From the IMG/VR virus record IMGVR_UViG_3300044213_000107, positions 196,724 through 260,723 of that record: a DNA stretch of 64,000 nucleotides; one strand, given 5' to 3'. Position 1 is the stretch's first letter; each line of letters starts with the position of its first letter. Below the pieces are notes generated by a model. That model was given only the letters and a program-made list of their open reading frames with translations. It made no database searches and was not told where the DNA came from. Below, piece after piece: positions 1-13,493 of the stretch. A program made the translations under genes and the position numbers.

Positions 1-24
1 TGTCTATTGGATTGTCGATTAAAA

Positions 25-100
25 TGGTGCCGCCTCTAGGTATCGAACCTAATTCTCTAGTGCTTCAAACTAGCGTGAGGACCTCCTTCACCAAAGCGGC
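25..100 (-). tRNA. tRNA-Phe(GAA)
   Basis: Cloverleaf, anticodon arm CTAGT-TTGAAGC-ACTAG, encoded CCA. Confidence 0.88.
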
Positions 101-103
101 ATA

Positions 104-178
104 TGGTCCGGCCACCAGGAATCGAACCTGGATTACAAGATTAGAAGTCTCGGGTATTATCCATTATACGATGGCCAG
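104..178 (-). tRNA. tRNA-Arg(UCU)
   Basis: Anticodon loop CTTCTAA, T-loop TTCGATT, CCA end. Confidence 0.9.
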
Positions 179-213
179 CGTCTGTAAAATGGTGCGCTCG
201 GAGGGACTTGAAC
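175..213 (-). repeat. 39-bp direct repeat copy 1 (T-loop to CCA of tRNA-Ile2 plus spacer; att-like)
   Basis: 37/39 identical to 2214-2252. Confidence 0.9.
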
Positions 214-248
214 ATTTTTATTATTCATTATACGAACGCTAGAGATTT

Positions 249-686
249 TTATAGTATAGCCGATAACCAATCAGTATACAATAAATTTTTATGTATTTTT
301 ATTTTCATTATCCCAGGAAAACTCATAAAGGAATGAGTCTTCCATACCTTGTTGCTTGTATCTTTGTACACAGATATTTTAGATATGCTATTGATAAAAT
401 CTATAGTATCCACTGTTAACCTTTCCAACACAATATATAAATCTTCAGTTATATCATTGTTGGAATCAATTTTTGTGTCTGTTAGTTCCTTATTAACAAA
501 TTCTATTGAAACACTGGTTAAATCAGAATTAACAGGAATATTATAATGATGTATTTCTTCTATATCATTTTTATGTTCAATCGCATATTCGTACACACAT
601 AATTTATTGTTTATAAAAATGTTATATACAGGTTTTTTAGTAGACGTTGAATGGAGTAGCAACGATAGGGATAACTTTTTTGTCAT
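249..686 (-). CDS. hypothetical protein, 145 aa
   Basis: ORF overlapping the end of the radical SAM gene, inside the repeat-flanked cassette. Confidence 0.7.
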   Translation of the reverse strand: MTKKLSLSLLLHSTSTKKPVYNIFINNKLCVYEYAIEHKNDIEEIHHYNIPVNSDLTSVSIEFVNKELTDTKIDSNNDITEDLYIVLERLTVDTIDFINSISKISVYKDTSNKVWKTHSFMSFPGIMKIKIHKNLLYTDWLSAIL

Positions 687-2169
687 TTTGCTTGTGCTCT
701 AAATATTTTTGCTCTAATCCTTCGATCTCTAATAATTTTTCATTTTGTCGGTTGATTTCAGAATAATACCCATATTCCTGCATTACTTCAACAAATCTTT
801 TCCATCTGTTTACTCTAACATCAAATGTATTGTTTACAAATTGTGTGCTAGTCCAGAAAAAATCGCCCCACTGGTCATGCCTATTATGTTCAAGACCGTA
901 TTCATCTGCATATCGTTGCATGAACCCGCTTCCATTTGTTAGCACCATTGGCAAAGATAAAAATACTTTTATCATATTGTTAGTTGTTAAGTGGGCATGA
1001 GTTTTAAGTAAATCGATACTTTGTTGGAAATCATCTTCCGTTTCGGTGGGATATCCTACAAACATTAACCATACTTGTTTTATACCTTTATCAAAACAAT
1101 TTTCAGCAAACCAAGTTATATCTTCATTACTGAATTTCTTCTTCATATCGTTACGAACTTTTTCACTACCCGACTCTATGCCTACTTTAAACAATTTCGC
1201 TCCGGCAGTTGATGCTAGTTTAAAATCTGATTCAGGCATGGATATTTTAGATCGACAAATGGCATAGCCAGAATATTCTATTCTATTGGGAATTTCTTCA
1301 GTTAATACCGTATTCATTAAACGATAATTTGTGATACTCCCATTCACAAGATTGTCAGTAAACTCAAACTTATTAATACCATATTTAGAATGTGTTTCGA
1401 TAATTTCACGTGCTATATCATTACCTTTTCTGTAGACGAATTTTGGCCAAGACGACTGCACATCGCAAAATGTACACTCTCTGACACATCCTTTACTGCC
1501 AGTAACCGGTATAGTTAAATTTTTATTTTTGTAACTTGGATACAATGAAAAATTATATCCTTCCCATGAAGGTGCAGGTGTGTTACTAAGTGCCTCTGCA
1601 GATACAGGAGGTGCAGTGTGTATTCCTTTTTTCTTATTTTGGATGACAGAAATCAAATCATTTTCCGCATCCCCACGATACACAGAATCTATCGGAAGAT
1701 AATCCATGAAATAATTAGCATAATTAATTCCACTGATTCGTTCGTTGTTATCTAGACCTCTGCCACCTATCATTATGTAACTGTTAGGCGATATCTCTCG
1801 AACTATAGTGGATAAAGGTACAACAAAATCTAAACTTTGGCTAGAAAATACAGACAATAAAATTGTATCCGGATTAAAATTTTTTATTTGTTGTTTAACA
1901 GCTTTTCTAAGCCATTTTAAAATTTTTAAAATATTAATGCTATTTGCCGGTCTGTACCCTCTTATGGCAAACATATCTACTATTATATTCCATTGATCTG
2001 CAAATTCGCTAAACAAATCAATATTTAGGTCCCAAACTTTACTATTGTATCCATTATGTTTTAAAATGCCGTTTATAACTGCAGGGCCGTATGGAACATC
2101 TCCGAAACTTTCTATTCCTGTATTAACAACTCTTACTGGAACTACTATTGTAAGGACATTTTTATTCAT
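637..2169 (-). CDS. B12-binding domain radical SAM protein (class B methyltransferase-like)
   Basis: CxxxCxxC motif (CVRECTFC), N-terminal PYGPAVI..IL cobalamin-binding-like region, GIESGSEKVR, GYPTETEDDF. Confidence 0.88.
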   Translation of the reverse strand: MNKNVLTIVVPVRVVNTGIESFGDVPYGPAVINGILKHNGYNSKVWDLNIDLFSEFADQWNIIVDMFAIRGYRPANSINILKILKWLRKAVKQQIKNFNPDTILLSVFSSQSLDFVVPLSTIVREISPNSYIMIGGRGLDNNERISGINYANYFMDYLPIDSVYRGDAENDLISVIQNKKKGIHTAPPVSAEALSNTPAPSWEGYNFSLYPSYKNKNLTIPVTGSKGCVRECTFCDVQSSWPKFVYRKGNDIAREIIETHSKYGINKFEFTDNLVNGSITNYRLMNTVLTEEIPNRIEYSGYAICRSKISMPESDFKLASTAGAKLFKVGIESGSEKVRNDMKKKFSNEDITWFAENCFDKGIKQVWLMFVGYPTETEDDFQQSIDLLKTHAHLTTNNMIKVFLSLPMVLTNGSGFMQRYADEYGLEHNRHDQWGDFFWTSTQFVNNTFDVRVNRWKRFVEVMQEYGYYSEINRQNEKLLEIEGLEQKYLEHKQNDKKVIPIVATPFNVY

Positions 2170-2213
2170 AGTAATATTTAGTAGACTAAACCAACCCAGT
2201 ATACTATCTTATA

Positions 2214-2252
2214 CCAGCATCTGTAAAATGGTGCGCTTGGAGGGACTTGAAC
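2214..2252 (-). repeat. 39-bp direct repeat copy 2
   Basis: Matches 175-213; includes the 3' end of the intact tRNA-Ile2. Confidence 0.9.
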
Positions 2253-2305
2253 CCCCGACCAAGCGATTATGAGTCGCCTGCTCTGACCAACTGAGCTACA
2301 AGCGC
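2229..2305 (-). tRNA. tRNA-Ile2(CAU), lysidine type
   Basis: Anticodon arm GGCGACTCATAATCGCTT as in enterobacterial ileX; CCA. Confidence 0.8.
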
Positions 2306-2311
2306 ATTAAC

Positions 2312-2397
2312 TGGTGCGACTGGCCGGAATCGAACCGGCACGGGAAAATCCCGGCAGATTTTAAGTCTGCTGCGGCTACCGATTACGCCACAGTCGC
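2312..2397 (-). tRNA. tRNA-Leu(UAA)
   Basis: Loop CTTAAAA, long variable arm, CCA. Confidence 0.92.
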
Positions 2398-2403
2398 TTA
2401 TCC

Positions 2404-2479
2404 TGGTGCCGGAGAAAGGAGTCGAACCCTCGACCTTCGCATTACAAGTGCGCTGCTCTACCAACTGAGCTACTCCGGC
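2404..2479 (-). tRNA. tRNA-Thr(UGU)
   Basis: Loop CTTGTAA, canonical D and T arms. Confidence 0.93.
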
Positions 2480-2489
2480 TAAAACTTTT

Positions 2490-2582
2490 TGGCGGAGCGG
2501 GAGGGATTCGAACCCTCGATACAGTTCATCACCGTATGACACCTTAGCAGGGTGCTGACTTCAGCCGCTCATCCACCGCTCC
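2490..2582 (-). tRNA. tRNA-Ser(GCU)
   Basis: Loop CTGCTAA, long variable arm, G discriminator. Confidence 0.92.
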
Positions 2583-2588
2583 AAATCC

Positions 2589-2664
2589 TGGTGGTCAGAA
2601 GAGCACTCGAAGCTCCACATTCATCCTTATGAGGGATGCTCTCTTCCTCTTAAGATATCTGACC
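2589..2664 (-). tRNA. tRNA-Met(CAU), probably elongator, atypical T-stem
   Basis: CATCC-CTCATAA-GGATG; T arm GGAGC-TTCGAGT-GCTCT. Confidence 0.8.
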
Positions 2665-2755
2665 ATATAAAAACACACTCTTATCAATATCCCAGCGGTC
2701 GACTCGGTTTAACAGGGCCCAACGTAGAGGGTCGGGCGAATGTGTTTTTATATGG
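2663..2755 (-). ncRNA. unassigned ~93-nt RNA closed by a 15-bp stem
   Basis: CCATATAAAAACACA ... TGTGTTTTTATATGG inverted repeat around a GC-rich core, between tRNA units. Confidence 0.55.
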
Positions 2756-2790
2756 TAGGAGCACGGGGATTTGAACCCTGAACCTATCAA
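2753..2790 (-). pseudogene. orphan tRNA 3' half (3' anticodon-stem strand, T arm, acceptor strand, CCA)
   Basis: Minus strand TTGATAGGTTCAGGGTTCAAATCCCCGTGCTCCTACCA; the HNH ORF lies where the 5' half would be. Confidence 0.75.
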
Positions 2791-3362
2791 TGACTGAGTA
2801 GTCGTTTTGCCCTGGCGTGGCTAGCACCCTTGTCAGGCAACCCAACACTTCTCAATGCTTCTGAAATAGTATTATGTTTCTTAACAGCCTCTAATAATAC
2901 TTCATCCGGAACAATTCTTTTTTTGTTATTTCTTCCTCGCCAAGTCTTAGTTTTTGAATGACAATTAGGACAAATACATTCTAAATTAGATCGGTCATTA
3001 TTTTTTGTATCACCGTCTTTATGCTCTAATTCTAAAACAATAGGATCACCCATCCATTCTGAAATTCCACAATGGTTACACTTATGACCTTGCTCTTCTA
3101 ATACCCGTCGCTTTCTATTCTCGCTACCTAATTTTTCAAAAGGTGTGGATTGGTATTTCTCTAATGCCCAAGCTGTTGTCTTGGCACTTCGTAATCTTAT
3201 TTCCTCGGTTGTAATTGGAGTTTTTCTAGTCCAACGACCGGCATTAGCAATACTTTTCTTCTTTTTGCTTTCTTCAGTAAACACTCTACTATTTGAACAT
3301 TTTCTAGAACAGAATGTTCCAGGCTTAGTATGTGCTGTATTACATTTAGGACAATTTTTCAT
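2787..3362 (-). CDS. HNH homing endonuclease with N-terminal Zn-finger
   Basis: CxxC..FCSRKC, then CNHC...LELEHKDGDTKNNDRSNLECICPNCH. Confidence 0.9.
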   Translation of the reverse strand: MKNCPKCNTAHTKPGTFCSRKCSNSRVFTEESKKKKSIANAGRWTRKTPITTEEIRLRSAKTTAWALEKYQSTPFEKLGSENRKRRVLEEQGHKCNHCGISEWMGDPIVLELEHKDGDTKNNDRSNLECICPNCHSKTKTWRGRNNKKRIVPDEVLLEAVKKHNTISEALRSVGLPDKGASHARAKRLLSH

Positions 3363-3365
3363 AAT

Positions 3366-3410
3366 ATTGAACTCTTACTTGTTATACTTTATTTATACTT
3401 AAAGTTCAAT
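3366..3410 (-). promoter_or_regulatory. late promoter TATAAATA inside an RBS-sequestering hairpin (HNH gene)
   Basis: ATTGAACT/AGTTCAAT arms flank TATAAATA at 3390-3397. Confidence 0.7.
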
Positions 3411-3426
3411 TTTATCAAAAATCAGT

Positions 3427-3500
3427 TGGTAGGCCCGGAGGGTACTGACCCCTCTTTTACGGATTAAAAGTCCGTTACTTCACCTTAAAGTTTCAAGCCC
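3427..3500 (-). tRNA. tRNA-Lys(UUU), non-canonical
   Basis: ACGGA-CTTTTAA-TCCGT; A8 instead of U8; T-loop GTCAGTA. Confidence 0.8.
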
Positions 3501-3505
3501 GTATG

Positions 3506-3580
3506 TGGTCCTTGCTCAGAGAATCGAACTCTGTTAGTCCGGGTAAGAGCCGGATACTTCGCCAGCAAAGTTTAGCAAGG
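3506..3580 (-). tRNA. tRNA-Lys(CUU)
   Basis: TCCGG-CTCTTAC-CCGGA; same A8 and ACTT/AAGT D-stem as its neighbour. Confidence 0.85.
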
Positions 3581-3589
3581 ATGGTTTGT

Positions 3590-3639
3590 ATTAACGAGTT
3601 CTTTAATGTCTTACAAACATATTAAAGAGTTCTTTAATG
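3590..3639. repeat. two 19-nt near-palindromic direct repeats
   Basis: ATTAACGAGTTCTTTAATG (3590-3608) and ATTAAAGAGTTCTTTAATG (3621-3639). Confidence 0.75.
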
Positions 3640-3676
3640 TGCCATCCCAGGACCAATACGGGGTCTTAGGATGACA

Positions 3677-3697
3677 CTACTGTTTACCTTGTTTCAT
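3677..3697 (-). CDS. six-codon leader ORF MKQGKQ
   Basis: AAAGGAA RBS, ATG AAA CAA GGT AAA CAG TAG, followed immediately by a 15-bp hairpin (3640-3676). Confidence 0.5.
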   Translation of the reverse strand: MKQGKQ

Positions 3698-3724
3698 GTC
3701 AAATTCCTTTGTGTTAAAAATGCT

Positions 3725-3753
3725 ATTATACAACTATCACAGCCAGTTGTCAA
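3725..3753 (-). promoter_or_regulatory. consensus sigma70 promoter
   Basis: TTGACA-N17-TATAAT. Confidence 0.85.
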
Positions 3754-3761
3754 CTGTTTTT

Positions 3762-3836
3762 TGGTACCCGGTGCTGGAATTGAACCAGCGACCCTTGCGT
3801 TATCAGCACAATGCTCTACCCCTGAGCTAACCGGGT
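3762..3836 (-). tRNA. tRNA-Ile(GAU)
   Basis: Loop CTGATAA. Confidence 0.92.
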
Positions 3837-3854
3837 ATTTTAATAAATATGTGT

Positions 3855-4034
3855 ATGATCTCTGAAGAAATTGAAAACTCTTGGAAATACTTGTATAGAT
3901 TCGTAGACGAATCCTACAAACCAAAATCATTTTGGTGTACACCCAGCGAGTTCAAACTTGAAGAACTGCCACAAATTGGTACCTCCGGAGAGACTCGAAC
4001 TCCCGACTCTTTCGTTCGTAGCGAAATACTCTAA
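3855..4034 (+). CDS. small hypothetical or remnant ORF running antisense into tRNA-Arg
   Basis: TAAATA-N5-ATG start; 3' third overlaps the tRNA. Confidence 0.35.
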   Translation: MISEEIENSWKYLYRFVDESYKPKSFWCTPSEFKLEELPQIGTSGETRTPDSFVRSEIL

Positions 4035-4053
4035 TCCACTGAGTTACGGAGGC
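3977..4053 (-). tRNA. tRNA-Arg(ACG)
   Basis: TTTCG-CTACGAA-CGAAA. Confidence 0.92.
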
Positions 4054-4056
4054 ATA

Positions 4057-4131
4057 TGGGGTGCGATACGAGAATCGAACTCGCGATAGCGGAATCACAA
4101 CCCGCGGTTTTGCCACTAAACTAATCACACC
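4057..4131 (-). tRNA. tRNA-His(GUG)
   Basis: Loop TTGTGAT, G-1:C73. Confidence 0.92.
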
Positions 4132-4165
4132 ATATCAATAAATACTTGCAGGTACCAAGATAAGT

Positions 4166-4744
4166 ATGGAACACAATTTAAATCTACAATATACACAAAT
4201 ACGTGATTATGTATTTGCATTATCTATACAATTTCCTTACTCCGACGAAGAAATTTTATCTGCAGCAAATACCGAGATTCTTGAACGATGGGTTGGTCCC
4301 GGTGATAGGTACCGAACAAATTCTCCACAATCTAAAATATTAAAAGATATATTTGAAATATTTAAAGATCCTGCGATATTTAAACAACAAATATTAGATA
4401 CGTTATACGCCACTGAAAAATACAAATATTTCTGGATTCGCAGCAAACAAGATTTGTTTACATCTTCAAGATTAAGTGTCGCACTCTACAAAGATTCTGC
4501 CAAATATTATTTAAAAAATCACCTGGATCCAAGAGACGTTATTGTATCAGGAATGTATTATCTCACAAAGTCAGATTTACAATATACAACAATCTACACT
4601 TCGGAAAATAATGATAATCCAATACAACTACTACCCAGTCAATACCAAGGTTGGATGTTAGCCAACACTGAAAATAGTTGGCACGATGGCAGAAATGAAG
4701 ATTCTGTTGATAGGATTGCCATTTATTATGATTTGTATCTATAA
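4166..4744 (+). CDS. 2OG-Fe(II) oxygenase family protein
   Basis: HxD (NHLD) ... SWHDG ... R facial-triad pattern. Confidence 0.7.
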   Translation: MEHNLNLQYTQIRDYVFALSIQFPYSDEEILSAANTEILERWVGPGDRYRTNSPQSKILKDIFEIFKDPAIFKQQILDTLYATEKYKYFWIRSKQDLFTSSRLSVALYKDSAKYYLKNHLDPRDVIVSGMYYLTKSDLQYTTIYTSENNDNPIQLLPSQYQGWMLANTENSWHDGRNEDSVDRIAIYYDLYL

Positions 4745-4746
4745 CT

Positions 4747-4820
4747 TGGCGACCCATGAAGGAATCGAACCTCCGTCCTTAGTTTTGGAGACTAGTACAC
4801 TACCATTGTGCTAATGGGCC
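4747..4820 (-). tRNA. tRNA-Trp(CCA)
   Basis: Loop CTCCAAA. Confidence 0.92.
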
Positions 4821-4824
4821 AAAT

Positions 4825-4910
4825 TGGTGGAAGTCCAGGGACTCGAACCCCGTATGCCGTAAGACGTCGGATTTACAGTCCGATGCAGTAACCTGTTCTG
4901 CTCGACTTCC
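4825..4910 (-). tRNA. tRNA-Tyr(GUA)
   Basis: Loop CTGTAAA, variable arm. Confidence 0.92.
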
Positions 4911-4916
4911 TTTATG

Positions 4917-5001
4917 TGGTGCGGATGGTGAGACTCGAACTCACACACCTTACGGTAATGGCTTCTAAGACCATCTCGGCTACCAGTTACGACACATCCG
5001 C
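4917..5001 (-). tRNA. tRNA-Leu(UAG)
   Basis: Loop CTTAGAA, variable arm. Confidence 0.92.
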
Positions 5002-5008
5002 AAAAACT

Positions 5009-5082
5009 TGGAGCGGGATAGGAGAATCGAACTCCTAACTAAACCTTGGCAAGGTTTCGTTTGACCATTAAACTAATCCCGC
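5009..5082 (-). tRNA. tRNA-Gly(GCC)
   Basis: AAACC-TTGCCAA-GGTTT, U discriminator. Confidence 0.92.
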
Positions 5083-5095
5083 AACTCCGAAAACA

Positions 5096-5171
5096 TGGCT
5101 GTCTAGGCAGGGATCGAACCTACGACAGGGTGATTAACAGTCACCTGCTCTACCAACTGAGCTACTAGACA
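5096..5171 (-). tRNA. tRNA-Asn(GUU)
   Basis: Loop CTGTTAA. Confidence 0.92.
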
Positions 5172-5183
5172 ATATTTATACTC

Positions 5184-5257
5184 TGGTGCCTCGTGACAGA
5201 ATCGAACTGCCGTCTGCACCGTGTAAGGATGCGGCCCTACCATTAGACGAACGAGGC
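5184..5257 (-). tRNA. tRNA-Val(UAC)
   Basis: Loop CTTACAC. Confidence 0.9.
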
Positions 5258-5329
5258 GAAATTTGGCGCCGATTTTTGTCATTTTAACTGAGGCTAACGA
5301 GCACTCCCTCAGATTAGTTGCAACTTATT

Positions 5330-5403
5330 TGGTGGAGAAGGAGAGAATCGAACTCTCAATTGAAGCTTGCAAAGCTACCGTTATCCCATTTAACTACATC
5401 CCC
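5330..5403 (-). tRNA. tRNA-Ala(UGC)
   Basis: Loop TTTGCAA, G3:U70. Confidence 0.88.
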
Positions 5404-5407
5404 AAAA

Positions 5408-5557
5408 TTATTCTTTAGTTTGTTCTTTGTGTTCTAGTAGTTTTTGTTGATATTGATCTTCAGTTAAACCATGCCAACCACAACACTTACCGTCTGGGCT
5501 ACGGCCACAACCGCATTTACCAATGTCTTCTGCATTTTCTTGTACTCTCATTTGCAT
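5408..5557 (-). CDS. 49-aa CDGSH-like (2Fe-2S or Zn) mini-protein, absent from the ORF track
   Basis: AAAGGAA RBS; MQMRVQENAEDIGKCGCGRSPDGKCCGWHGLTEDQYQQKLLEHKEQTKE. Confidence 0.7.
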   Translation of the reverse strand: MQMRVQENAEDIGKCGCGRSPDGKCCGWHGLTEDQYQQKLLEHKEQTKE

Positions 5558-5577
5558 GCATTTCCTTTATTAAAAAA

Positions 5578-5654
5578 TGGTCCGTGTGACACGATTCGAA
5601 CATGCGACCACCTGGTCCCAAACCAGGAGCTCTACCAGGCTGAGCTACACACGG
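5578..5654 (-). tRNA. tRNA-Pro(UGG)
   Basis: CCTGG-TTTGGGA-CCAGG. Confidence 0.92.
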
Positions 5655-5659
5655 AAAAC

Positions 5660-5734
5660 TGGATGCGGGAGACGGAATTGCACCGCCGATCTTCAGGTTA
5701 TGAGCCTGATGAGTTACTACTTCTCCATCCCGCG
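5660..5734 (-). tRNA. tRNA-fMet(CAU), initiator-like
   Basis: C1:A72 mismatch, loop CTCATAA. Confidence 0.8.
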
Positions 5735-5742
5735 ATAAACAA

Positions 5743-5816
5743 TGGTAAGGGAACTAGGAATCGAACCTAGAATAGCAGAATCAAAATCTGTTGTGATACC
5801 ATTTCACTATTCCCCA
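5743..5816 (-). tRNA. tRNA-Gln(UUG)
   Basis: Loop TTTTGAT. Confidence 0.88.
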
Positions 5817-5822
5817 ACGATG

Positions 5823-5898
5823 TGGTACTCGGTAGGGAATTCGAATCCCTGTTCACGCCGTGAAAGGGCGTTGTCCTAGGCCTCTAGACGAACCGAGC
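5823..5898 (-). tRNA. tRNA-Glu(UUC)
   Basis: ACGCC-CTTTCAC-GGCGT. Confidence 0.92.
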
Positions 5899-5907
5899 AT
5901 ACTTGTT

Positions 5908-5986
5908 TGGCGACTTGTAGGGGATTTGAACCCCTGATCTCTACCGTGACAGGGTAGCGCATTAAGCCAGACTATGCTAACAAGCC
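5908..5986 (-). tRNA. tRNA-Asp(GUC)
   Basis: CTACC-CTGTCAC-GGTAG. Confidence 0.92.
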
Positions 5987-5991
5987 AAATT

Positions 5992-6229
5992 CTCTATATG
6001 TAAACATACCTAAGGAACTCTTGAACAATATGGACTCTGCCGGCACCACGGGTTCGTCTCCCGATTGGGTTCATTCGTTATTACAGCCTACATGATCTGT
6101 CAGTACACTCGTACAGTATCTTGCGATCCGTAACTACCTTCATGTGCACTGCATACTCCGCCCCGGCGAGCTGTCCCCTTTGCAAGCACCTAACAGTATA
6201 GGTAACCTTTTGTACGTTTACATATAGAG
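5992..6229 (-). ncRNA. unassigned ~238-nt structured RNA
   Basis: 14-bp terminal stem CTCTATATGTAAAC/GTTTACATATAGAG, GC-rich interior, ATC-GCAA-GAT tetraloop hairpin. Confidence 0.6.
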
Positions 6230-6263
6230 GCTATTGTTTACAATAGCTTATATGTGATTAACT

Positions 6264-6433
6264 TTTTAAAGAACACAGTTAATTGCTTAACAAGCATGTA
6301 TTGTAACACCTTTTTGGACAATTAGCAAGTGTTTTTTACTGCTGTTGCTGATTTGCTACAACGTTTGTTCGATAACAAACTAGTTAATTTCTTAACTTGT
6401 ATCTATTATAGCACCAAATAATAACCCGCACAA
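6264..6433 (-). promoter_or_regulatory. tandem sigma70 promoters, each with a GNRA hairpin, then a boxA-like site
   Basis: TTGTGC-N17-TATAAT (6433-6405); TTGCTA-N17-TACAAT (6328-6300); GTTAA-GAAA/GCAA-TTAAC; TGTTCTTTAAAA (6275-6264). Confidence 0.7.
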
Positions 6434-6466
6434 TCTTCGGGTTTTGGGTGTTGTTTTTTAATAACA

Positions 6467-6489
6467 TGGAGTAGGTGACAGGACTTGAA
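6467..6489 (-). pseudogene. orphan tRNA 3' fragment (T-loop to UCCA)
   Basis: Minus strand TTCAAGTCCTGTCACCTACTCCA, truncated at the T-loop next to the HNH-like gene. Confidence 0.7.
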
Positions 6490-6524
6490 ATATATATTAT
6501 TTCGTTTTGAACATAAATAATAAC

Positions 6525-7310
6525 ATGAACACCTGTCAACAATGTACTTCATTATTTGCTCAAACTCCTGGAACGTACGGTAAATTTTGCTCTGTATCCT
6601 GTAGTAGTAAGTTTAATAATAAAATTAGACGCCAACAGACTACGGAAAACTATTTATTAAATCCAAAAGTTTGTAAAAATTGCAATTCAATCATAAATTA
6701 TTCTCAAAGAAAAAGTAATATTTTTTGTAGCCGATCCTGCGCCGCTGTGTTTAATAATGCCAAAAAAGATTGGACTAATATTAAAACTGGGCCGACACCT
6801 AAACAAAAGGCACCGAAATTAAAAAGAAAAGCGAGAACTAATACTATCCCAGATGCAGACGGACCATACACTATTATATACCTATGCACTTGCAAATTTA
6901 CTGGAAAAAAATGGTACTCCCCAACAGTTAAGACCATACACCCATCAACAATATCAACTAAAAAATTGTATTCTTATCAATGTAGATTTAACTTTGGTAT
7001 TAAGTCGTACCCTGAATGGTTTGCTTATGCATCAAATTTAATAAACACTAACGGCTGGTACTCAGCCTCTAATAGAGGTAATAATTTATCTGGATGTTCT
7101 CGTGATCATTTGTATTCAGTATCGGATGGATACAAAAACAATATAGATCCTAAAATAATATCTCATCCTGCAAACTGTGAGATAATTCCGCACAGGAAAA
7201 ATCAGAGTAAAAACAAGACTTCGTCGATTACATTAGAAGAACTAAAAGAAAGAATCAAAAAATTTAATCAAAAATATTTGGAGATGCCAGATGGGGTCGA
7301 GCCATCCTAG
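6525..7310 (+). CDS. Zn-finger repeat / HNH-like homing endonuclease
   Basis: Two CxxC..FCSxSC motifs; C-terminal SRDH...HPANCEIIPHRKNQSK; start moved to the ATG after TAAATA-N5. Confidence 0.75.
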   Translation: MNTCQQCTSLFAQTPGTYGKFCSVSCSSKFNNKIRRQQTTENYLLNPKVCKNCNSIINYSQRKSNIFCSRSCAAVFNNAKKDWTNIKTGPTPKQKAPKLKRKARTNTIPDADGPYTIIYLCTCKFTGKKWYSPTVKTIHPSTISTKKLYSYQCRFNFGIKSYPEWFAYASNLINTNGWYSASNRGNNLSGCSRDHLYSVSDGYKNNIDPKIISHPANCEIIPHRKNQSKNKTSSITLEELKERIKKFNQKYLEMPDGVEPS

Positions 7311-7352
7311 AAAGTTTTGCAGGCTTCCACCTAACCGCTCGGACATGGCATC
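7279..7352 (-). tRNA. tRNA-Cys(GCA), divergent T-loop
   Basis: Loop CTGCAAA, U discriminator; overlapped antisense by the HNH-like ORF end. Confidence 0.8.
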
Positions 7353-7402
7353 GTAATATAAAAATTTTAGTGTGGTAGTTCGGCGCACACCTACATAATA
7401 AA

Positions 7403-7495
7403 TGGTGGAAGCGGTGAGACTCGAACTCACACACCCTGTTGAGAGCCCTCAGTTTTCAAGACTGCTGCCGCTATGCCGATTCGGCTAACGCTTCC
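7403..7495 (-). tRNA. tRNA-Ser(UGA)
   Basis: Loop CTTGAAA, long variable arm. Confidence 0.9.
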
Positions 7496-7497
7496 AA

Positions 7498-8679
7498 TTA
7501 TACTGGGAATACTTCCCTAAAATTTGTTTTTCTTATACGATCTAACATACCAATATATTCGTTAAATGTATTGATTAAGTTAGGATTGTGCACAGCATTT
7601 TCCAATGAGTTTATTGTAAATTTAATCGCTGATATATAGTTATATCGCAGATAATGCGTTAAAGGAATCTGAGATTTTAGTTCTTGCAAATCGAGAATAA
7701 ATTGATTTCTTTGTGCATCTGTTAACACTTCTATGTCTAAATATGGTTTAGACATTAATCTACCAACATTCACAGCATATGAGTTATCAACACAATATTG
7801 AATTAATGGTATCAACGCCCAGAAACTTGTATACTGTAGTGTATGGCCAATGGTAATAGGATTATTAGGCCATGTAGGATTAGGACGTGTGGCTAATTTT
7901 TTAATATTAGCATCTACGGTTGCCCACTCACTACCATATCTAACATATTCTGTATGTTGCTCGGTACCTTCTAAACTTACAACTATTGCAACAGATTTAA
8001 ATTTTGAAATACAATCGTATACTTCATCTGTTAATGTTGTACCGTTTGTGGTAACTGTTAAATTTAATTGCTCCGGATGCGGAATGCTTTTTAACATTGC
8101 AATAGCATTAGGAGTTATAAGTGGCTCGCCACCTGTTAAAAAAATATGTTCAACATTTTCTAATAGTCGAGGCTCCAGCTCTTGATATTCATCTGTTTCA
8201 AACCAATTTCTTTTTTGTATAAATTGATCATCATGAGTTAAGTGAACAAAATTTTTATATTGTTCTCTATTCATTTTTACTTCAGTTTCTATACTAGAAC
8301 TGCAATAAGGATTACACATTATACATTTTAAATTACAGTGATTGCCAAATTCAACATGTAAATGTTTTATGCCATAAGATTTATCTGGTGAAAAATCTTG
8401 TCTAATAAAATTTTCAAATGTGCGATTACCATTTATTCTGTACGACGATGATCCATTGTCTTCTTCGTCCCAACAACGACTACAACCTTCATGTCTTTGG
8501 CCATTGTCTAGTTCTTGACTAATTTTAATAACTTTTGTTTGTCGCCAACGATCAAATTGATCATATTTATCAACCAAATTACCATCTTTTATTTGATAAT
8601 TACAACAAGGTGTAAGTGTGCCGTCTGTGCGAATATTAACACCAATATGCGAATGTATACAAAATGTTTCTTGATTCAT
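7498..8679 (-). CDS. radical SAM protein with N-terminal SPASM/twitch-like Cys cluster
   Basis: CNLKCIMC, TGGEPL, TTNGT; N-terminal C..PCC..CxxC; start moved to MNQETFC. Confidence 0.88.
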   Translation of the reverse strand: MNQETFCIHSHIGVNIRTDGTLTPCCNYQIKDGNLVDKYDQFDRWRQTKVIKISQELDNGQRHEGCSRCWDEEDNGSSSYRINGNRTFENFIRQDFSPDKSYGIKHLHVEFGNHCNLKCIMCNPYCSSSIETEVKMNREQYKNFVHLTHDDQFIQKRNWFETDEYQELEPRLLENVEHIFLTGGEPLITPNAIAMLKSIPHPEQLNLTVTTNGTTLTDEVYDCISKFKSVAIVVSLEGTEQHTEYVRYGSEWATVDANIKKLATRPNPTWPNNPITIGHTLQYTSFWALIPLIQYCVDNSYAVNVGRLMSKPYLDIEVLTDAQRNQFILDLQELKSQIPLTHYLRYNYISAIKFTINSLENAVHNPNLINTFNEYIGMLDRIRKTNFREVFPV

Positions 8680-8709
8680 AGTGATATTTATATGCAACAT
8701 ATATTGTAA

Positions 8710-8804
8710 TATTCTAAAACTGATTAGTTTCGGGAGATGTCCGTCCTATACAACCGGCCCTTTCAATGAGCCTGTAAAATATTCTTCTACTCAGTTTTAG
8801 AATA
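8710..8804 (-). ncRNA. unassigned ~95-nt RNA closed by a 14-bp stem
   Basis: TATTCTAAAACTGA ... TCAGTTTTAGAATA. Confidence 0.5.
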
Positions 8805-8812
8805 CCCTTTAT

Positions 8813-8943
8813 TGCTAGAGGATATGATAGGGTCAATACCCTACCCAGGAGTCTTACTAATCGGTTTCCGCCCGACGTTCATGTATCCTGTCCGCCCGTT
8901 TGTGCTAGTTAAAGTGAGCACGGGACCTCGTTTCCCTTGAGCA
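8813..8943 (-). ncRNA. unassigned multibranch structured RNA
   Basis: GC-rich island with nested helices CCCG-TGCT/AGCA-CGGG, CAGGA/TCCTG, TCGG/CCGA, TAGGGT/ACCCTA. Confidence 0.55.
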
Positions 8944-8951
8944 CTCGATTC

Positions 8952-9101
8952 TTAGCGTTTTTGCATCTTGCCTGCAAGTTTTTTTATTGCAGCAATATGC
9001 AGTTCTGCTCTACGTACTTTACTCTCTATTAAAGCAACTCGTTGTTCTGGTGTTAGAACATGTTGCTCTTTGAGAGGTTTAGTATTCTTTTTTTCTAACA
9101 T
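8952..9101 (-). CDS. 49-aa basic helical protein, absent from the ORF track
   Basis: AAAGGAAA RBS; MLEKKNTKPLKEQHVLTPEQRVALIESKVRRAELHIAAIKKLAGKMQKR. Confidence 0.7.
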   Translation of the reverse strand: MLEKKNTKPLKEQHVLTPEQRVALIESKVRRAELHIAAIKKLAGKMQKR

Positions 9102-9114
9102 CTTTTTCCTTTGT

Positions 9115-9153
9115 AAAAAACAAAACCCCGGAGTGTTTAGTTCCGGGGTTCTG
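9115..9153 (-). terminator. intrinsic terminator of the candidate attenuator
   Basis: CAGAACCCCGGA-loop-TCCGGGGTTTTG followed by a U-tract. Confidence 0.88.
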
Positions 9154-9174
9154 TGAATCTCAACTAAACAGTTA

Positions 9175-9300
9175 CTAAGATTTAAGAACCCCTACACGAT
9201 CATTATTAATACTTGTTGAACGCACAGATTCGCACCAAAAGGCTGGTGTTAGCTGTTTGCCTAACATATAATAATGATTGCTAATGAGTTTGTTTAACAT
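9175..9300 (-). CDS. 41-aa attenuator leader peptide containing all 20 amino acids
   Basis: MLNKLISNHYYMLGKQLTPAFWCESVRSTSINNDRVGVLKS; its 3' end carries GGGGTTCT, complementary to the terminator 5' arm. Confidence 0.75.
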   Translation of the reverse strand: MLNKLISNHYYMLGKQLTPAFWCESVRSTSINNDRVGVLKS

Positions 9301-9307
9301 AGTATCT

Positions 9308-9336
9308 ATTGTAGTATATTTATCTTTATTCGTCAA
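9308..9336 (-). promoter_or_regulatory. sigma70 promoter with an embedded late TAAATA motif
   Basis: TTGACG-N17-TACAAT, 7 nt before the leader ATG. Confidence 0.8.
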
Positions 9337-9355
9337 CTATTTATTTATCCAAAAA

Positions 9356-9673
9356 TTATCCATGAATAATTGTTTCGTCGTCGAAATAACCTTGCGTAAG
9401 AGCAGTTAACTCAGGACTTGGCGTTGGTATATCCGGTGCGTTTTCTGCGCTTACTTCTTCCCAGCCGACTACAACACCATTTTCAACGATTTCTGTTGCA
9501 GTAGAATGCCCGGCTGCTTGGTGTGCTTGTTTTTCGGCTGTGTGTTGTTCCCACAAAGTTTTAAATTTAGTTAAGTCATCGCCTGTTAAATGGTCATTTA
9601 CCCACTGTTCAATAGAATACGGAACTTTTGTTCCATCTGGCATTACCTTAACTGCAATCTTTTTTGTTGTCAT
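9356..9673 (-). CDS. hypothetical protein, 105 aa
   Basis: AAGGAG RBS and upstream TAAATA. Confidence 0.8.
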   Translation of the reverse strand: MTTKKIAVKVMPDGTKVPYSIEQWVNDHLTGDDLTKFKTLWEQHTAEKQAHQAAGHSTATEIVENGVVVGWEEVSAENAPDIPTPSPELTALTQGYFDDETIIHG

Positions 9674-9732
9674 AATAGACTCCTTTAGTATATGTTTATA
9701 TTTAGTTTTCTTTATAAAAAAGAATACAATAC

Positions 9733-11055
9733 CTATTTTTTAAACCATTGGTATACAATTGATTCTGCAGGTTTGTTTCTAATACTTTGACTGATATTAG
9801 GGAAAGTTGTGTGAGCTTGGATATTATCAGCTAACCAATATGAATTGATAGAAAACGACTCTACATTAACATATTGTTGTTCGTTAATTGTTTCTAACAT
9901 AGATTCATAAGCAATTGCTTGAACACTAAAATCTGTAGTTAATGTAGCAGCACAATTTAGTGACCAACACCCGCTGTCTTCTACCCAGCCCTGGCTTAGG
10001 GTATGATTCCAACTTTGTACTTGTGCAACTATTTCTATCGGCTTTGTTGTACCGTATGTGTTTTGGGCACCATGCAATGTTGTTGCATAATAGGGTTTAA
10101 GTACTGCAACACTAAGATTTTGTTCATCAGATGAACTAATTCTTCCCACTAATGATCCAATTGTTACAACAATTTTATCTACAGAATCTGTAACCGATTT
10201 GCTATATACCCAGGATTGTTCTAGTACTAATTTACCAGAATAAATAGCTCTTAATTTATTTGCTAGATTGACCAATGATTGTTCTCTTATACCTGCAAAA
10301 TTTGTAAAGTCAGGAGTCCAATCGTCCCAATCTAAAGTCATGCTTTCATACCCAGAAGATTGTAATATGACTGCCTGCGATGTCATATAGTTACTATATG
10401 CGGTATATAAATCACTAAGCCATTGATTATTTGTAATGACTAAATTCTGCCCGACACTATCTGTAGTACATATCTGCATTTTATAACGAATATTAAGTCC
10501 AATTGCATGAGCTTGTTGTGCCATCCAGGTTAAGTCTGCGGCAGGAATGCTTTCTCTTCCAAAAAGTGAAAAATCTTGTCCTGGCGTACTTGCTGATGCT
10601 ATACAAATATATTGAGGTACTGTTACATATGTGCCACCTAATGCTTTTATTCTCTGTATTGTTTGCACAAATGCAGTATGCATATCTGAATTACACCCTG
10701 GATTATTTGGTGTTTTTTGACTACCTGGATCTAACCAACTATCTTTTATAGTCAGACCCAATTGAAGAGTAGCCGGCATGTGTCCCGATACAGCAGGCAA
10801 AGGAAATGCGCCTTGATATGATGCAGGATATTGAACTGTTGTAGTAGATAACAAACATGTATCGTCGACTACCGGCAATGTTTGAATTTGTGTATATGTA
10901 CCGGGATATGTATTTGCGGTAATGTTGGTATTGATTGCCACAAAAGATCCTGTTTGTGGTTGGACCGGGACTGAGGTCGATGCACCACCACCTCCGCATG
11001 CGGTTAATATCAAAGATGCAGAAAAAAGTAATACTAAAGTTTTAAACATATGCAT
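9733..11055 (-). CDS. lipoprotein with glycoside-hydrolase-like (GH113-type TIM barrel) domain
   Basis: Lipobox LTAC-GGGG; IKALGGTYV, AHAIGLNI, LRAIYSGKL, NKPAE; own promoter TTGTCC-N17-TATAAT (11107-11079). Confidence 0.6.
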   Translation of the reverse strand: MHMFKTLVLLFSASLILTACGGGGASTSVPVQPQTGSFVAINTNITANTYPGTYTQIQTLPVVDDTCLLSTTTVQYPASYQGAFPLPAVSGHMPATLQLGLTIKDSWLDPGSQKTPNNPGCNSDMHTAFVQTIQRIKALGGTYVTVPQYICIASASTPGQDFSLFGRESIPAADLTWMAQQAHAIGLNIRYKMQICTTDSVGQNLVITNNQWLSDLYTAYSNYMTSQAVILQSSGYESMTLDWDDWTPDFTNFAGIREQSLVNLANKLRAIYSGKLVLEQSWVYSKSVTDSVDKIVVTIGSLVGRISSSDEQNLSVAVLKPYYATTLHGAQNTYGTTKPIEIVAQVQSWNHTLSQGWVEDSGCWSLNCAATLTTDFSVQAIAYESMLETINEQQYVNVESFSINSYWLADNIQAHTTFPNISQSIRNKPAESIVYQWFKK

Positions 11056-11121
11056 ACCTAGTTAAAAGACATGTGCGTATTATAATATATTTTTGAATGT
11101 TGGACAATTGGTTGTTGCAAA

Positions 11122-13493
<2,372 letters not shown>

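Follow-up and report, generated by a model that had tools for sequence, protein, structure and literature searches.

Our comparative analyses show that a very short ORF at the head of the tRNA cluster of a giant phage is part of an element conserved in hundreds of uncultured lake phages (more than 200 metagenomic phage loci), where 147 of 195 unique leader peptides contain all 20 amino acids and the ORF overlaps two mutually exclusive RNA helices. The element most likely works as a test strip for tRNA supply that decides whether the phage's own tRNA genes are transcribed. It was first noticed in a sequence-only reading of one stretch of DNA, the 64,000-nucleotide window analysed here (positions 196,724 to 260,723 of IMG/VR record IMGVR_UViG_3300044213_000107), and every detail of that observation proved correct. 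The interpretation offered with it, a ribosome-mediated attenuator responding to shortage of almost any charged tRNA, is supported by the comparative data, although it needs several corrections given below.

The leader ORF and its proposed RNA switch in the window

The element lies on the minus strand (Table 1). No purine-rich Shine-Dalgarno sequence precedes the ATG. The amino acid set of the encoded peptide is complete at codon 34 (Asp), codons 14-27 specify 14 different residues, Met occurs again at codon 12, and Leu (TTA, CTC, CTA, CTT) and Ser (AGC, TCT, TCA, AGT) each use four codons. The ORF was not called by the gene caller of the source record and its exact sequence is absent from the protein collection. 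Near its end, GGGGTTCT is the exact complement of AGAACCCC, and the antiterminator segment folds as a single hairpin closed by G1-C48 at -17.3 kcal/mol, whereas the 7-bp terminator core gives -12.1 kcal/mol. The minimum free energy (MFE) fold of the full-length sequence chooses the terminator plus the inner hairpin (z = -3.7 against shuffles).

Table 1. Features of the element and its surroundings, in window coordinates.
Position	Strand	Feature
9331-9336	-	-35 hexamer TTGACG
9308-9313	-	-10 hexamer TACAAT, after a 17-nt spacer and 7 nt (AGATACT) before the ATG at 9300 (leaderless or near-leaderless mRNA)
9175-9300	-	Leader ORF, 41 codons plus TAG (9177-9175), encoding all 20 amino acids
9185-9192	-	5' arm of the antiterminator, GGGGTTCT, inside codons 37-39
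9156-9182	-	Apical (inner) hairpin of the antiterminator: AATCTTAGT (9182-9174) paired with GTTGAGATT (9164-9156), containing the stop codon
9145-9152	-	3' arm of the antiterminator, AGAACCCC; its CCCC also starts the terminator stem (shared, mutually exclusive segment)
9115-9148	-	Intrinsic terminator, unique in the window: CCCCGGA (9148-9142), 9-nt A-rich loop ACTAAACAC (9141-9133), TCCGGGG (9132-9126), U-tract TTTTGTTTTTT (9125-9115)
8952-9101	-	49-aa protein with an AGGA Shine-Dalgarno, function unknown; first gene gated in the proposed model
8715-8950	-	Conserved non-coding stretch with the motif GGAAACGAGGTCC (two ncRNAs in the sequence-only reading)
7498-8700	-	Radical SAM gene inserted between the attenuator and the first tRNA; specific to this phage lineage
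25-7495	-	tRNA array of 26 genes covering all 20 amino acids, interrupted by ORFs and internal promoters (24 genes, plus two more from the Rfam search)
7282-7352		Reads as tRNA-Cys GCA
3430-3500		tRNA-Lys UUU
6328-6300		Internal promoter-like site
about 6414		Internal promoter-like site
3753-3725		Internal promoter-like site, perfect consensus
5577-5738	+	Second all-20 ORF, antisense to tRNA genes, regarded as chance

Taken alone, this single case was only mildly unusual. The probability of finding all 20 kinds in 41 residues, a calculation that the sequence-only reading had asked for, is 0.28% with the proteome composition of this phage, 1.2% with the flattened composition of the leader family, and 4.4% for a perfectly uniform composition, and 2 of 147 ATG ORFs of 30-55 codons in the window are all-20. 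The promoter match (10 of 12) is not unusual by itself either, since 54 such sites were found against 46 expected, and in one related locus (L011; we number the related loci with the prefix L) the ORF starts 19 nt after the upstream gene with a poor -35. Significance comes from conservation, and the reading as a chance ORF lying between a chance promoter-like site and the terminator of the upstream operon is refuted by the conservation of the whole arrangement in hundreds of loci.

Conservation of the leader and covariation of both helices

Relatives were not found among deposited phage genomes. Blastn searches with the region and with a main-clade member against 50,697 of these gave no match, no cultured phage carrying the element was identified, and scans of IMG/VR with neighbouring proteins recovered only the source contig or radical SAM genes of 25% identity without tRNAs. 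Useful relatives came instead from the 533-aa neighbour protein and from DNA patterns. The terminator pattern gave 92 IMG/VR loci and at least 120 metagenome loci, but only 5 hits in 596 Gb of bacterial genomes, all of them unrelated terminators without a leader or tRNAs. An independent ascertainment by an ORF DNA motif gave 94 unique loci, of which 88 are all-20; of the 62 with other terminator loops, 56 are all-20.

The sequence-only reading had named as its test whether short ORFs upstream of tRNA arrays in related phages keep all 20 residues despite divergence, with covarying antiterminator and terminator pairings, and the outcome was favourable on both counts. Among unique leaders of 30-55 aa, 136 of 176 are all-20, compared to 0.86% of other 35-52-codon ORFs in related loci and 1.4% of 44-aa windows of real proteins, although about a quarter of leaders lack one or more kinds. 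Among 33 lineages below 60% identity about 19 are all-20, against 2.0 (maximum 6) after column shuffling, and per-residue counts are under-dispersed. At 30-60% sequence divergence the property is retained in 94-100% of pairs, whereas random replacement would keep it in 9-43%. Cys and His change position between lineages and exchange places between the window's leader and its relative L093. Synonymous-codon diversity is only slightly above expectation (33.4 against 31.1 distinct codons), which we treat as weak.

The promoter is also found in relatives. The -35 becomes the consensus TTGACA in the near-identical relative L007; in 72 of 139 family members a TTGACA-like hexamer, N17 and TAyAAT lie 6-10 nt (mode 7) before the ATG, and the arrangement TAyAAT-AGAnACT-ATG occurs in L011, L013 and L014. 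The ORF, of 35-52 codons in its 195 unique variants, starts at a promoter +1 or after AAGGA, and nucleotide differences fall at codon positions 1/2/3 in the ratio 550/504/801, a modest third-position excess which, as translation was not measured, does not by itself settle whether the ORF is translated. Its peptide sequence is only weakly constrained (874 nonsynonymous against 378 synonymous codon differences).

Both helices covary. The antiterminator is 87.7% paired across 149 sequences, with 73 double-change cells against 21 in shuffles, and slid controls give 61-63% paired; the terminator stem is 99.2% paired, with 69 double-change cells against 9 in shuffles, and U-rich tails occur in all members. 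When the shared CCCC becomes CCC in relatives, the upstream G-run shortens to GGG and the 3' arm of the terminator changes with it. The antiterminator closes G1-C(last) in 113 of 119 sequences, with a mean of -22 kcal/mol against -12.4 for the terminator, and the MFE picks the terminator in 61 sequences and the antiterminator in 55, so the element is bistable. The G-arm lies 5-53 nt before the stop codon and always inside the ORF, and in every family member the stop codon lies inside the antiterminator hairpin, 24-37 nt before the terminator stem. The end of the leader thus overlaps the antiterminator, as in ribosome-mediated attenuators.

An ordinary small protein gene with its own promoter and terminator, next to tRNAs by mere synteny and with a long hairpin that is just mRNA structure, would account for the conserved length, the partial sequence conservation, the third-position excess and the annotation of the ORF by one gene caller in L011. 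However, we consider it improbable, since nonsynonymous changes dominate while composition is held complete, the two exclusive helices covary and are energetically balanced, the stop codon is always inside the antiterminator, tRNA genes start 17-29 nt after the terminator in some lineages, and a functional 40-aa protein has no known reason to need one of each residue at shifting positions or to mirror the neighbouring tRNA set.

The terminator loop is unusually conserved (ACTAAACAC, ATTAAAAAC), varying only within A(C/T)TAAA(A/C)AC in independently ascertained relatives, and the same loop sequence recurs on the apical antiterminator hairpin in some loci (for example L030, L054 and L132). A homologous 49-61-aa ORF starts within 50 nt of the terminator in 65 of 116 loci (the 49-aa protein itself is identical in 3 relatives), and the motif AACGAGG lies downstream of the terminator in 58 of 116. 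Neither the leader, the 49-aa protein nor the three upstream proteins matched Pfam or PHROGs, and Rfam gave nothing but tRNAs in the region. In principle, a trans-acting protein or RNA binding this loop or the downstream non-coding RNA could set the switch independently of leader translation, but this seems unlikely, as it does not explain the ORF, its placement over the antiterminator or its composition, and loop conservation was partly imposed by the search pattern in the first set.

A peptide motif, W ... N-D-R-x-P-E, is conserved in most lineages with synonymous GAT/GAC and CGT/CGC changes, which a pure composition sensor does not predict, and a single Trp is invariant in 97% of lineages. 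The leader might therefore be a regulatory arrest peptide acting inside the ribosome tunnel in response to a small molecule or factor, as in TnaC, SecM or Erm leaders, with full amino acid coverage being secondary; the antiterminator/terminator geometry is equally compatible with this reading. Whether the motif causes arrest was not tested. Against this reading, the motif is absent from the short-leader subfamilies that keep the same switch and is reduced to N-D-R-V in the window. We regard this alternative as unlikely, because it does not explain the retention of all 20 residues through 30-60% divergence, the moving Cys and His, or the match between leaders and tRNA repertoires.

Linkage to tRNA genes and repertoire match

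The element is tied to tRNA arrays. Of 51 loci with at least 2 kb downstream, 50 carry a same-strand tRNA within 2 kb, at a median distance of 413 nt, and arrays hold 7-41 genes. In L069/L070 tRNA-Gly starts 17 nt after the terminator, and in L057 tRNA-Trp starts 29 nt after it. In the window, by contrast, 1.6 kb including the radical SAM gene separates the terminator from the first tRNA; this gene is absent at this position in L011, L013 and L014, where tRNAs follow within 200-400 nt. The caveat of the sequence-only reading, that internal promoters could transcribe most tRNAs of the window independently, stands: the internal promoter-like sites are strong, and together with the 1.6-kb insert they weaken the link to most tRNAs in this window.

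A result that had not been anticipated points the same way. Where a leader lacks some amino acids, the downstream tRNA set lacks largely the same ones: the L129 leader lacks D, H, R and Y, and its 18 downstream tRNAs lack D, E, H, R and Y, while in L189 the tRNAs for E, Y, D, R and H lie upstream of the attenuator. We looked for a second leader-type attenuator in front of this upstream tRNA group in L189 and L025 and found none, only promoters and structured RNA. In L070, 20 of 21 leader residues have a cognate tRNA downstream, and 17 of 22 codons are readable by those tRNAs (81%, against 47% of the phage's gene codons). The composition-weighted combined p over four subfamilies is 1.2e-5, although the tRNA sets used are truncated by locus ends in most cases. 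For all-20 leaders, codons are no better matched to the phage tRNAs than those of ordinary phage genes (66.4% against 65.5%), and exact matches are lower. The window's leader has no codon runs, restricted leaders use codons read by the downstream tRNAs, and the evidence on whether regulatory codons are cognate to the products of the regulated genes points both ways.

A proposed attenuator of phage tRNA genes

The best explanation, in which we have fairly good confidence, is a ribosome-mediated transcription attenuator controlling entry of RNA polymerase into the tRNA region. A sigma-70-type promoter would make a leaderless mRNA beginning with the ATG of the leader, whose last codons and stop codon lie in the 5' half of the antiterminator hairpin. 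A ribosome translating smoothly to the stop codon would unwind and occupy this half, so that the C-run pairs downstream, the terminator forms and transcription stops at 9115-9125. If the ribosome stalls anywhere in roughly the first 30 codons, or never starts, the antiterminator would form first and polymerase would read on into the 49-aa gene, the non-coding RNA and the tRNA genes. In this view, the leader is kept by selection as a sampler of the amino acids, and in restricted cases the codons, served by the tRNAs downstream, which for full arrays means all 20; shortage of any of those aminoacyl-tRNAs would raise tRNA transcription and abundance would shut it off. The match to the array's own tRNAs suggests such a feedback on tRNA supply rather than an amino acid starvation sensor. 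Our computations establish the anatomy, its conservation, the covariation of both helices, selection for full amino acid coverage, the linkage to tRNA arrays and the repertoire match, whereas leader translation, stalling, termination, read-through and the physiological trigger (for example codon-usage mismatch, host tRNA depletion or anticodon nucleases) are inferred, without experimental or transcript-level evidence. Coverage of the sensing-competent zone is, moreover, about 19 kinds rather than 20. In the window the only Asp codon lies 3 codons before the antiterminator arm, so that a ribosome stalled there should mask the arm and favour termination, and only 20 of 81 all-20 leaders in the family have all 20 kinds upstream of the masking zone (mean 18.9 against 17.9 permuted), Glu, Val and Asp being the usual absentees.

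Leader-peptide attenuators of the enterobacterial trp, his, thr, ilvGMEDA, leu and pheA operons and of pheST likewise have a short leader ORF and a terminator preceded by an exclusive antiterminator; their leader is translated, the position of the ribosome on it decides which helix forms, and completed translation favours termination while stalling favours read-through, as we propose here. The short-leader subfamily (for example L070, rich in Leu, Asn, Thr and Gly codons) even looks like a classical multi-amino-acid leader. Here, however, about one of each amino acid is kept by selection, the mRNA is leaderless in about half of the members, and the regulated genes are phage tRNA genes, plus a small protein and a non-coding RNA, rather than biosynthetic or synthetase genes. 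A hairpin at codons 18-23 exists in the window and four clustered substitutions in L007/L008 keep it paired, but we identified no family-wide pause or anti-antiterminator (1:2) hairpin, which leaves the presence of such an element an unsettled matter; without it, absence of translation should give read-through rather than super-attenuation.

The closest known system is the mycobacterial whiB7 uORF (PMC10274678), a terminator/antiterminator switch that senses general translation stress, so that the mechanism class is not unprecedented, contrary to the sequence-only reading. It is activated by deprivation of many different amino acids or by knock-down of tRNAs or synthetases, its sensitivity to an amino acid depends on that residue being present in the uORF, a single Trp codon suffices, and the M. 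smegmatis uORF has 19 of the 20 amino acids. According to that paper, however, the uORF is Ala-enriched, varies in composition and lacks several amino acids in M. tuberculosis, so completeness is not conserved. It is a cellular element of Actinobacteria without sequence relation to ours, and controls a transcription factor for drug resistance and alanine homeostasis; no such factor follows the leader in the window. The phage leaders are of diverse and complete composition, but their response to starvation was not measured. T-box riboswitches follow a similar logic, tying translation-supply genes to the charging state or availability of specific tRNAs through a terminator/antiterminator choice, but they bind one uncharged tRNA directly, need no translation and are specific for one amino acid; no T-box or other non-tRNA Rfam family matched window positions 1-13000 at E up to 1, nor four related loci at E up to 0.1. 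Arrest-peptide leaders (TnaC, SecM, ErmCL) share a conserved Trp and a conserved motif near the end of a short leader, with the ribosome at or near the stop codon controlling downstream RNA events, but act through peptide-tunnel contacts and a specific ligand or force, and show no selection for complete amino acid coverage and no relation to tRNA genes. Literature searches for a phage tRNA-array attenuator or an all-amino-acid leader returned nothing relevant except the whiB7 work, and we found no prior description of the element.

Although more speculative, and in our view about as likely as not, phage tRNA operons might be autoregulated by a self-test leader, a miniature mRNA kept by selection to contain the amino acids, and in restricted arrays the codons, decoded by the operon's own tRNAs. 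Any gap in the decoding capacity of the cell, arising from codon mismatch, host tRNA decay after infection or anticodon-nuclease defence, would stall the lead ribosome and open the operon, and the newly made tRNAs would close it again. This would be the first case of tRNA genes controlled by leader-peptide attenuation and the first leader selected for complete rather than biased amino acid content. It would extend a textbook mechanism in two ways, the sensing principle being completeness of the leader instead of codon runs and the regulated product being tRNA genes, with product feedback. Practically, it could give a compact genetic reporter of general aminoacyl-tRNA sufficiency and would provide an annotation rule for hundreds of uncultured phage genomes in which this ORF is mostly uncalled. 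Why large phages carry arrays of 20-40 tRNA genes, and when they use them, is an open question, for which codon-usage compensation, replacement of host tRNAs degraded during infection and evasion of tRNA-cleaving defences are the current ideas, and which a roughly 230-nt element driven by a consensus sigma-70 promoter makes directly testable. A conserved switch at the head of these arrays, built to read out translation of every amino acid that the array serves, would mean that the phage measures decoding capacity and supplies tRNAs on demand.

A candidate attenuator with a complete leader

On the minus strand, a −35 and a −10 hexamer separated by 17 nt are followed, after a further 7 nt, by the ATG of a 41-codon ORF. 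No Shine-Dalgarno sequence precedes this ORF, whereas the next gene has AGGA, so that a leaderless mRNA is the natural reading. The encoded peptide holds all 20 amino acids, the set being complete at codon 34. The other details that the sequence-only reading had described, including a run of 14 different residues at codons 14-27, an internal Met and the use of four different codons each for Leu and Ser, are exact, and its observation is confirmed. The segment GGGGTTCT, in codons 37-39, is the perfect complement of AGAACCCC, the CCCC of which begins the stem of a terminator. Folded alone, the stretch from the G-run to the C-run forms one hairpin of -17.3 kcal/mol that encloses the stop codon, against -12.1 kcal/mol for the terminator core, whereas the full-length minimum-energy fold takes the terminator. 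No Rfam family matches. The window is part of a 260,723-bp IMG/VR contig, and its RecA is 65-69% identical to those of the Atu_ph07 / GAP32 / CBB group of giant phages.

How often such an ORF would arise by chance had been named beforehand as a calculation to be made, and a single case turned out to be only mildly unusual. The probability of finding 20 kinds in 41 residues is 0.28% with the proteome composition of this phage and 1.2% with a flattened composition, and the window contains 147 ATG ORFs of 30-55 codons of which two have all 20. The case therefore rests on relatives.

Features of the proposed attenuator and its surroundings in the window and in related loci
Feature	Locus	Position	Strand
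−35 hexamer TTGACG	window	9336-9331	minus
−10 hexamer TACAAT	window	9313-9308	minus
Start codon ATG of the leader ORF	window	9300	minus
Four clustered substitutions relative to L007 and L008	window	9243-9255	minus
GGGGTTCT	window	9192-9185	minus
Stop codon TAG of the leader ORF	window	9177-9175	minus
AGAACCCC	window	9152-9145	minus
Terminator (7-bp stem, 9-nt loop, U-tract)	window	9148-9115	minus
Gene of the 49-aa protein	window	8952-9101	minus
Conserved non-coding stretch	window	8715-8950	minus
Conserved non-coding stretch	L011	13855-14045	
Conserved non-coding stretch	L013	10010-10190	
Conserved non-coding stretch	L014	8825-9190	
First radical SAM gene	window	7498-8700	minus
tRNA gene reading as GCA (Cys)	window	7282-7352	minus
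267-aa ORF	window	6507-7310	plus
Internal promoter-like regions	window	6290-6420; 3725-3753	minus
Promoter-like sites	window	3753-3725 (perfect consensus); 6328-6300; about 6414	minus
Structured-looking stretch	window	6000-6290	minus
Structured-looking stretch	L189	5010-5130	
Structured-looking stretch	L025	790-1060	
tRNA gene with anticodon UUU (Lys)	window	3430-3500	minus
Second radical SAM gene	window	637-2169	minus
Palindrome GTTAAGnAATTAAC	L011	14195-14215	
tRNA gene with anticodon CTA	L189	3744-3820	
tRNA gene with anticodon CTA	L025	1637-1715	
GOLLD RNA	L232	1-458	minus
Terminator loop sequence on the apical antiterminator hairpin	L030	7177-7262	
Terminator loop sequence on the apical antiterminator hairpin	L054	10474-10560	
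Terminator loop sequence on the apical antiterminator hairpin	L132	10092-10177	

Conservation of the leader and of the proposed RNA switch

Three near-identical contigs differ in the leader only by four clustered substitutions in codons 15-18, which change Leu17 and Thr18 but leave all 20 kinds, and one of these contigs improves the −35 to TTGACA. In the comparison with the relatives L007 and L008, the four substitutions fall within 10 nt (AAA CAG CTA ACA to AAG CAG CCA GCG) of an otherwise about 99% identical 460-nt stretch, in and beside a small hairpin (CACCAG..TTGGTG) whose pairing they keep or extend. This could be a multi-nucleotide or template-switch event, or reflect a constrained pause hairpin. 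The 533-aa protein encoded upstream has a graded series of homologues, and their contigs provided the first informative relatives. The locus L011, in which this neighbor is 80% identical, has a homologous 41-codon ORF with 19 kinds and the same switch; L013 (79%) has a perfect TTGACA-N17-TATAAT, a 34-codon ORF with 17 kinds and a terminator with two compensatory stem changes; and L014 (71%) has a 39-codon ORF with 19 kinds. In all three, tRNA genes follow within a few hundred bases. A pattern for the terminator hairpin then retrieved 92 IMG/VR loci and at least 120 metagenome loci, but only five unrelated hits in 596 Gb of bacterial genomes. Since this first set was ascertained by the loop, we made a second one from a DNA motif inside the ORF, which yielded 94 unique loci, 62 of them with other terminator loops.

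Whether short ORFs upstream of tRNA arrays in related phages retain all 20 residues despite sequence divergence, together with covarying antiterminator and terminator pairing, had been proposed in advance as a check of the sequence-only reading, and both parts came out in its favor. Over both sets there are 195 unique leader peptides, of which 147 contain all 20 amino acids. Of the 176 with 30-55 residues (median 45), 136 are complete and 150 have at least 19 kinds, the shortest complete ones having 35 residues. By contrast, only 14 of 1622 other ORFs of 35-52 codons in the same loci (0.86%) and 1.4% of 44-residue windows of long ORFs are complete. Because the leaders are related, we checked non-independence in three ways. 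First, taking one member per cluster below 60% identity (33 clusters), about 19 are complete, whereas shuffling residues within alignment columns, which keeps positional conservation, gives 2.0 (maximum 6 in 200 trials); counts of nearly every residue are under-dispersed (variance/mean 0.2-0.6), and Cys, His and Trp are present in 94%, 91% and 97% of lineages, against about 70% expected. Second, for equal-length pairs whose first member is complete, the partner is complete in 94-100% of cases at 30-60% divergence, against 9-43% expected if the same sites had received random residues of the family's composition. Third, single-copy residues move: the window has His before Tyr near the N-terminus and Cys after the Trp, whereas its relative L093 has Cys near the N-terminus and His after the Trp. 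The sequence itself is weakly constrained, with 874 nonsynonymous against 378 synonymous codon differences among close pairs; a conserved peptide motif (Trp, then N-D-R-x-P-E) is unexplained. Composition, not sequence, is what is held.

The RNA switch is conserved as well. In 113 of 119 sequences the segment from the G-run to the C-run folds as a hairpin closed by its first G and last C, with a mean energy of -22 kcal/mol against -12.4 for the terminator. With the 3' arm of the terminator included, the minimum-energy fold is the terminator in 61 sequences and the antiterminator in 55. On a 149-sequence alignment the antiterminator base helix is 87.7% paired, against 61-63% when slid by one column, and has 73 compensatory cells against 21 in shuffles, while the terminator is 99.2% paired, with 69 compensatory cells against 9. 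The two helices share the C-run; where that run is CCC instead of CCCC, the upstream G-run is GGG and the terminator's partner changes as well. The G-arm is always inside the ORF, and the stop codon is always inside the hairpin, 24-37 nt before the terminator stem. This is the geometry of an attenuator in which a ribosome that reaches the stop codon holds the 5' half of the antiterminator. In this simple model the only Asp codon of the window is too close to the antiterminator arm to be sensed; family-wide, the sensing-competent zone holds 18.9 kinds on average, and Glu, Val or Asp often occur only near the arm. In some lineages, for example at the loci L030, L054 and L132, the terminator loop sequence ACTAAACAC recurs as the loop of the apical antiterminator hairpin, suggesting that the A-rich loop is itself a recognized signal. 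Concerning start signals, about half of the members (72 of 139) have TTGACA-like, N17 and TAyAAT 6-10 nt (mode 7) before the ATG, whereas the rest have a longer 5' leader with AAGGA.

Linkage to phage tRNA arrays

Of 51 loci with at least 2 kb downstream, 50 have a same-strand tRNA within 2 kb, at a median distance of 413 nt, and arrays of 7-41 genes follow. In some lineages a tRNA starts 17 or 29 nt after the terminator, which leaves no room for another promoter. Between terminator and tRNAs there is often a conserved protein of 49-61 residues (core ..HTLT.EQ..KLI.EK.ERA..; 65 of 116 loci) and a conserved non-coding stretch with the motif AACGAGG (58 of 116 loci), and the window has both. Its 49-aa protein is identical in the three close relatives, has no Pfam or PHROG match and would be the first product gated by the switch. 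The non-coding stretch, located between the terminator (or the 49-aa gene) and the first tRNA, begins with a hairpin carrying GGAAACGAGGTCC, followed by GCACAAACGGGCGG; the CCC of the hairpin could pair alternatively with the downstream CGGG, and no Rfam family matches. The window also has an inserted radical SAM gene, so its first tRNA is 1.6 kb away, and the internal promoter-like sites may drive most of its tRNAs on their own. These have the same −10 and discriminator as leader promoters of the family (TATAAT-AGATAC, TACAAT-ACATGCT) but, instead of an ATG, are followed by the palindrome GTTAAGnAATTAAC, which also occurs in L011. A roughly 300-nt structured-looking stretch without Rfam match precedes a tRNA sub-cluster; it has a conserved hairpin followed by TATATGTAAAC and is shared between distant relatives (L189 and L025).

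Two radical SAM genes are embedded in the tRNA region of the window. The first has a weak N-terminal SPASM-like match and a weak QueE-like PHROG match, and they may be RNA- or tRNA-modifying enzymes. The 267-aa ORF on the opposite strand has Cys-rich N-terminal repeats and PHROG matches to HNH endonuclease families, so it is probably a homing endonuclease. In L232, from a related phage that carries the same attenuator, a GOLLD RNA (Rfam RF02032, 190.8 bits, E = 2e-52, cut by the locus end) sits beside the tRNA array. The tRNA regions of related phages (L189 and L025) include tRNA genes with anticodon CTA, labeled tRNA-Pyl by ARAGORN and thus amber-suppressor-like; the window has none, yet its leader ends in TAG.

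The exceptions to completeness proved the most informative. One subfamily has a 36-codon leader with 15-16 kinds, lacking Asp, His, Arg and Tyr (and usually Val). In its member L129 the 18 downstream tRNAs lack exactly Asp, Glu, His, Arg and Tyr, whereas in L189 and L025 the tRNAs for Glu, Tyr, Asp, Arg and His lie upstream of the attenuator, outside its reach. A second subfamily has 20-22-codon leaders made of Leu, Asn, Thr, Gly, Ala, Glu and Asp, and the tRNAs behind them are Gly, Glu, Ala, Leu, Ile, Asp, Asn, Thr, Val and Pro. In the locus L070, 20 of 21 residues have a cognate tRNA downstream and 17 of 22 codons are readable by those tRNAs, that is 81%, against 47% of the phage's gene codons. 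In another locus, L057, the leader has three Cys and one Trp in 26 residues, and tRNA-Trp, Pro and Cys follow at once. Against windows drawn from the phages' own proteins, the matches have p = 0.0017, 0.0064, 0.0098 and 0.092 in four subfamilies, combined 1.2e-5, although the tRNA sets are cut by locus ends. Complete leaders show no special codon match to phage tRNAs, but they stand before arrays that cover 16-20 kinds wherever at least 22 tRNAs are in view. The array of the window covers all 20 amino acids once two tRNAs (Lys and Cys) missed by ARAGORN but found by Rfam are counted.

A possible sensor of tRNA supply

Leader-peptide attenuation is a textbook mechanism. The nearest precedent for a general sensor is the mycobacterial whiB7 uORF, which is activated by many starvations and by tRNA or synthetase knock-downs, and for which a single Trp codon is enough (PMC10274678). 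However, its composition is Ala-biased and incomplete in several species, and it controls a transcription factor. T-boxes share the aim but not the means. Searches of the open literature found no description of an attenuator before phage tRNA arrays or of a leader kept complete for all amino acids.

The sequence-only reading had interpreted the element as an attenuator in which completed translation of the leader stops transcription while stalling at almost any codon allows read-through toward the tRNA array, making it a general sensor of charged-tRNA shortage. This interpretation is supported by our analysis, and sharpened. The parts, their conservation, the two covarying alternative helices, the selected completeness and the match to the tRNA set come directly from computation, whereas translation of the leader, stalling, termination and the trigger are inferences. 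There are no transcript or experimental data. Making more tRNA cannot cure amino-acid starvation. The match between leader and tRNA repertoire therefore points to a sensor of tRNA supply with product feedback rather than of amino acids as such.
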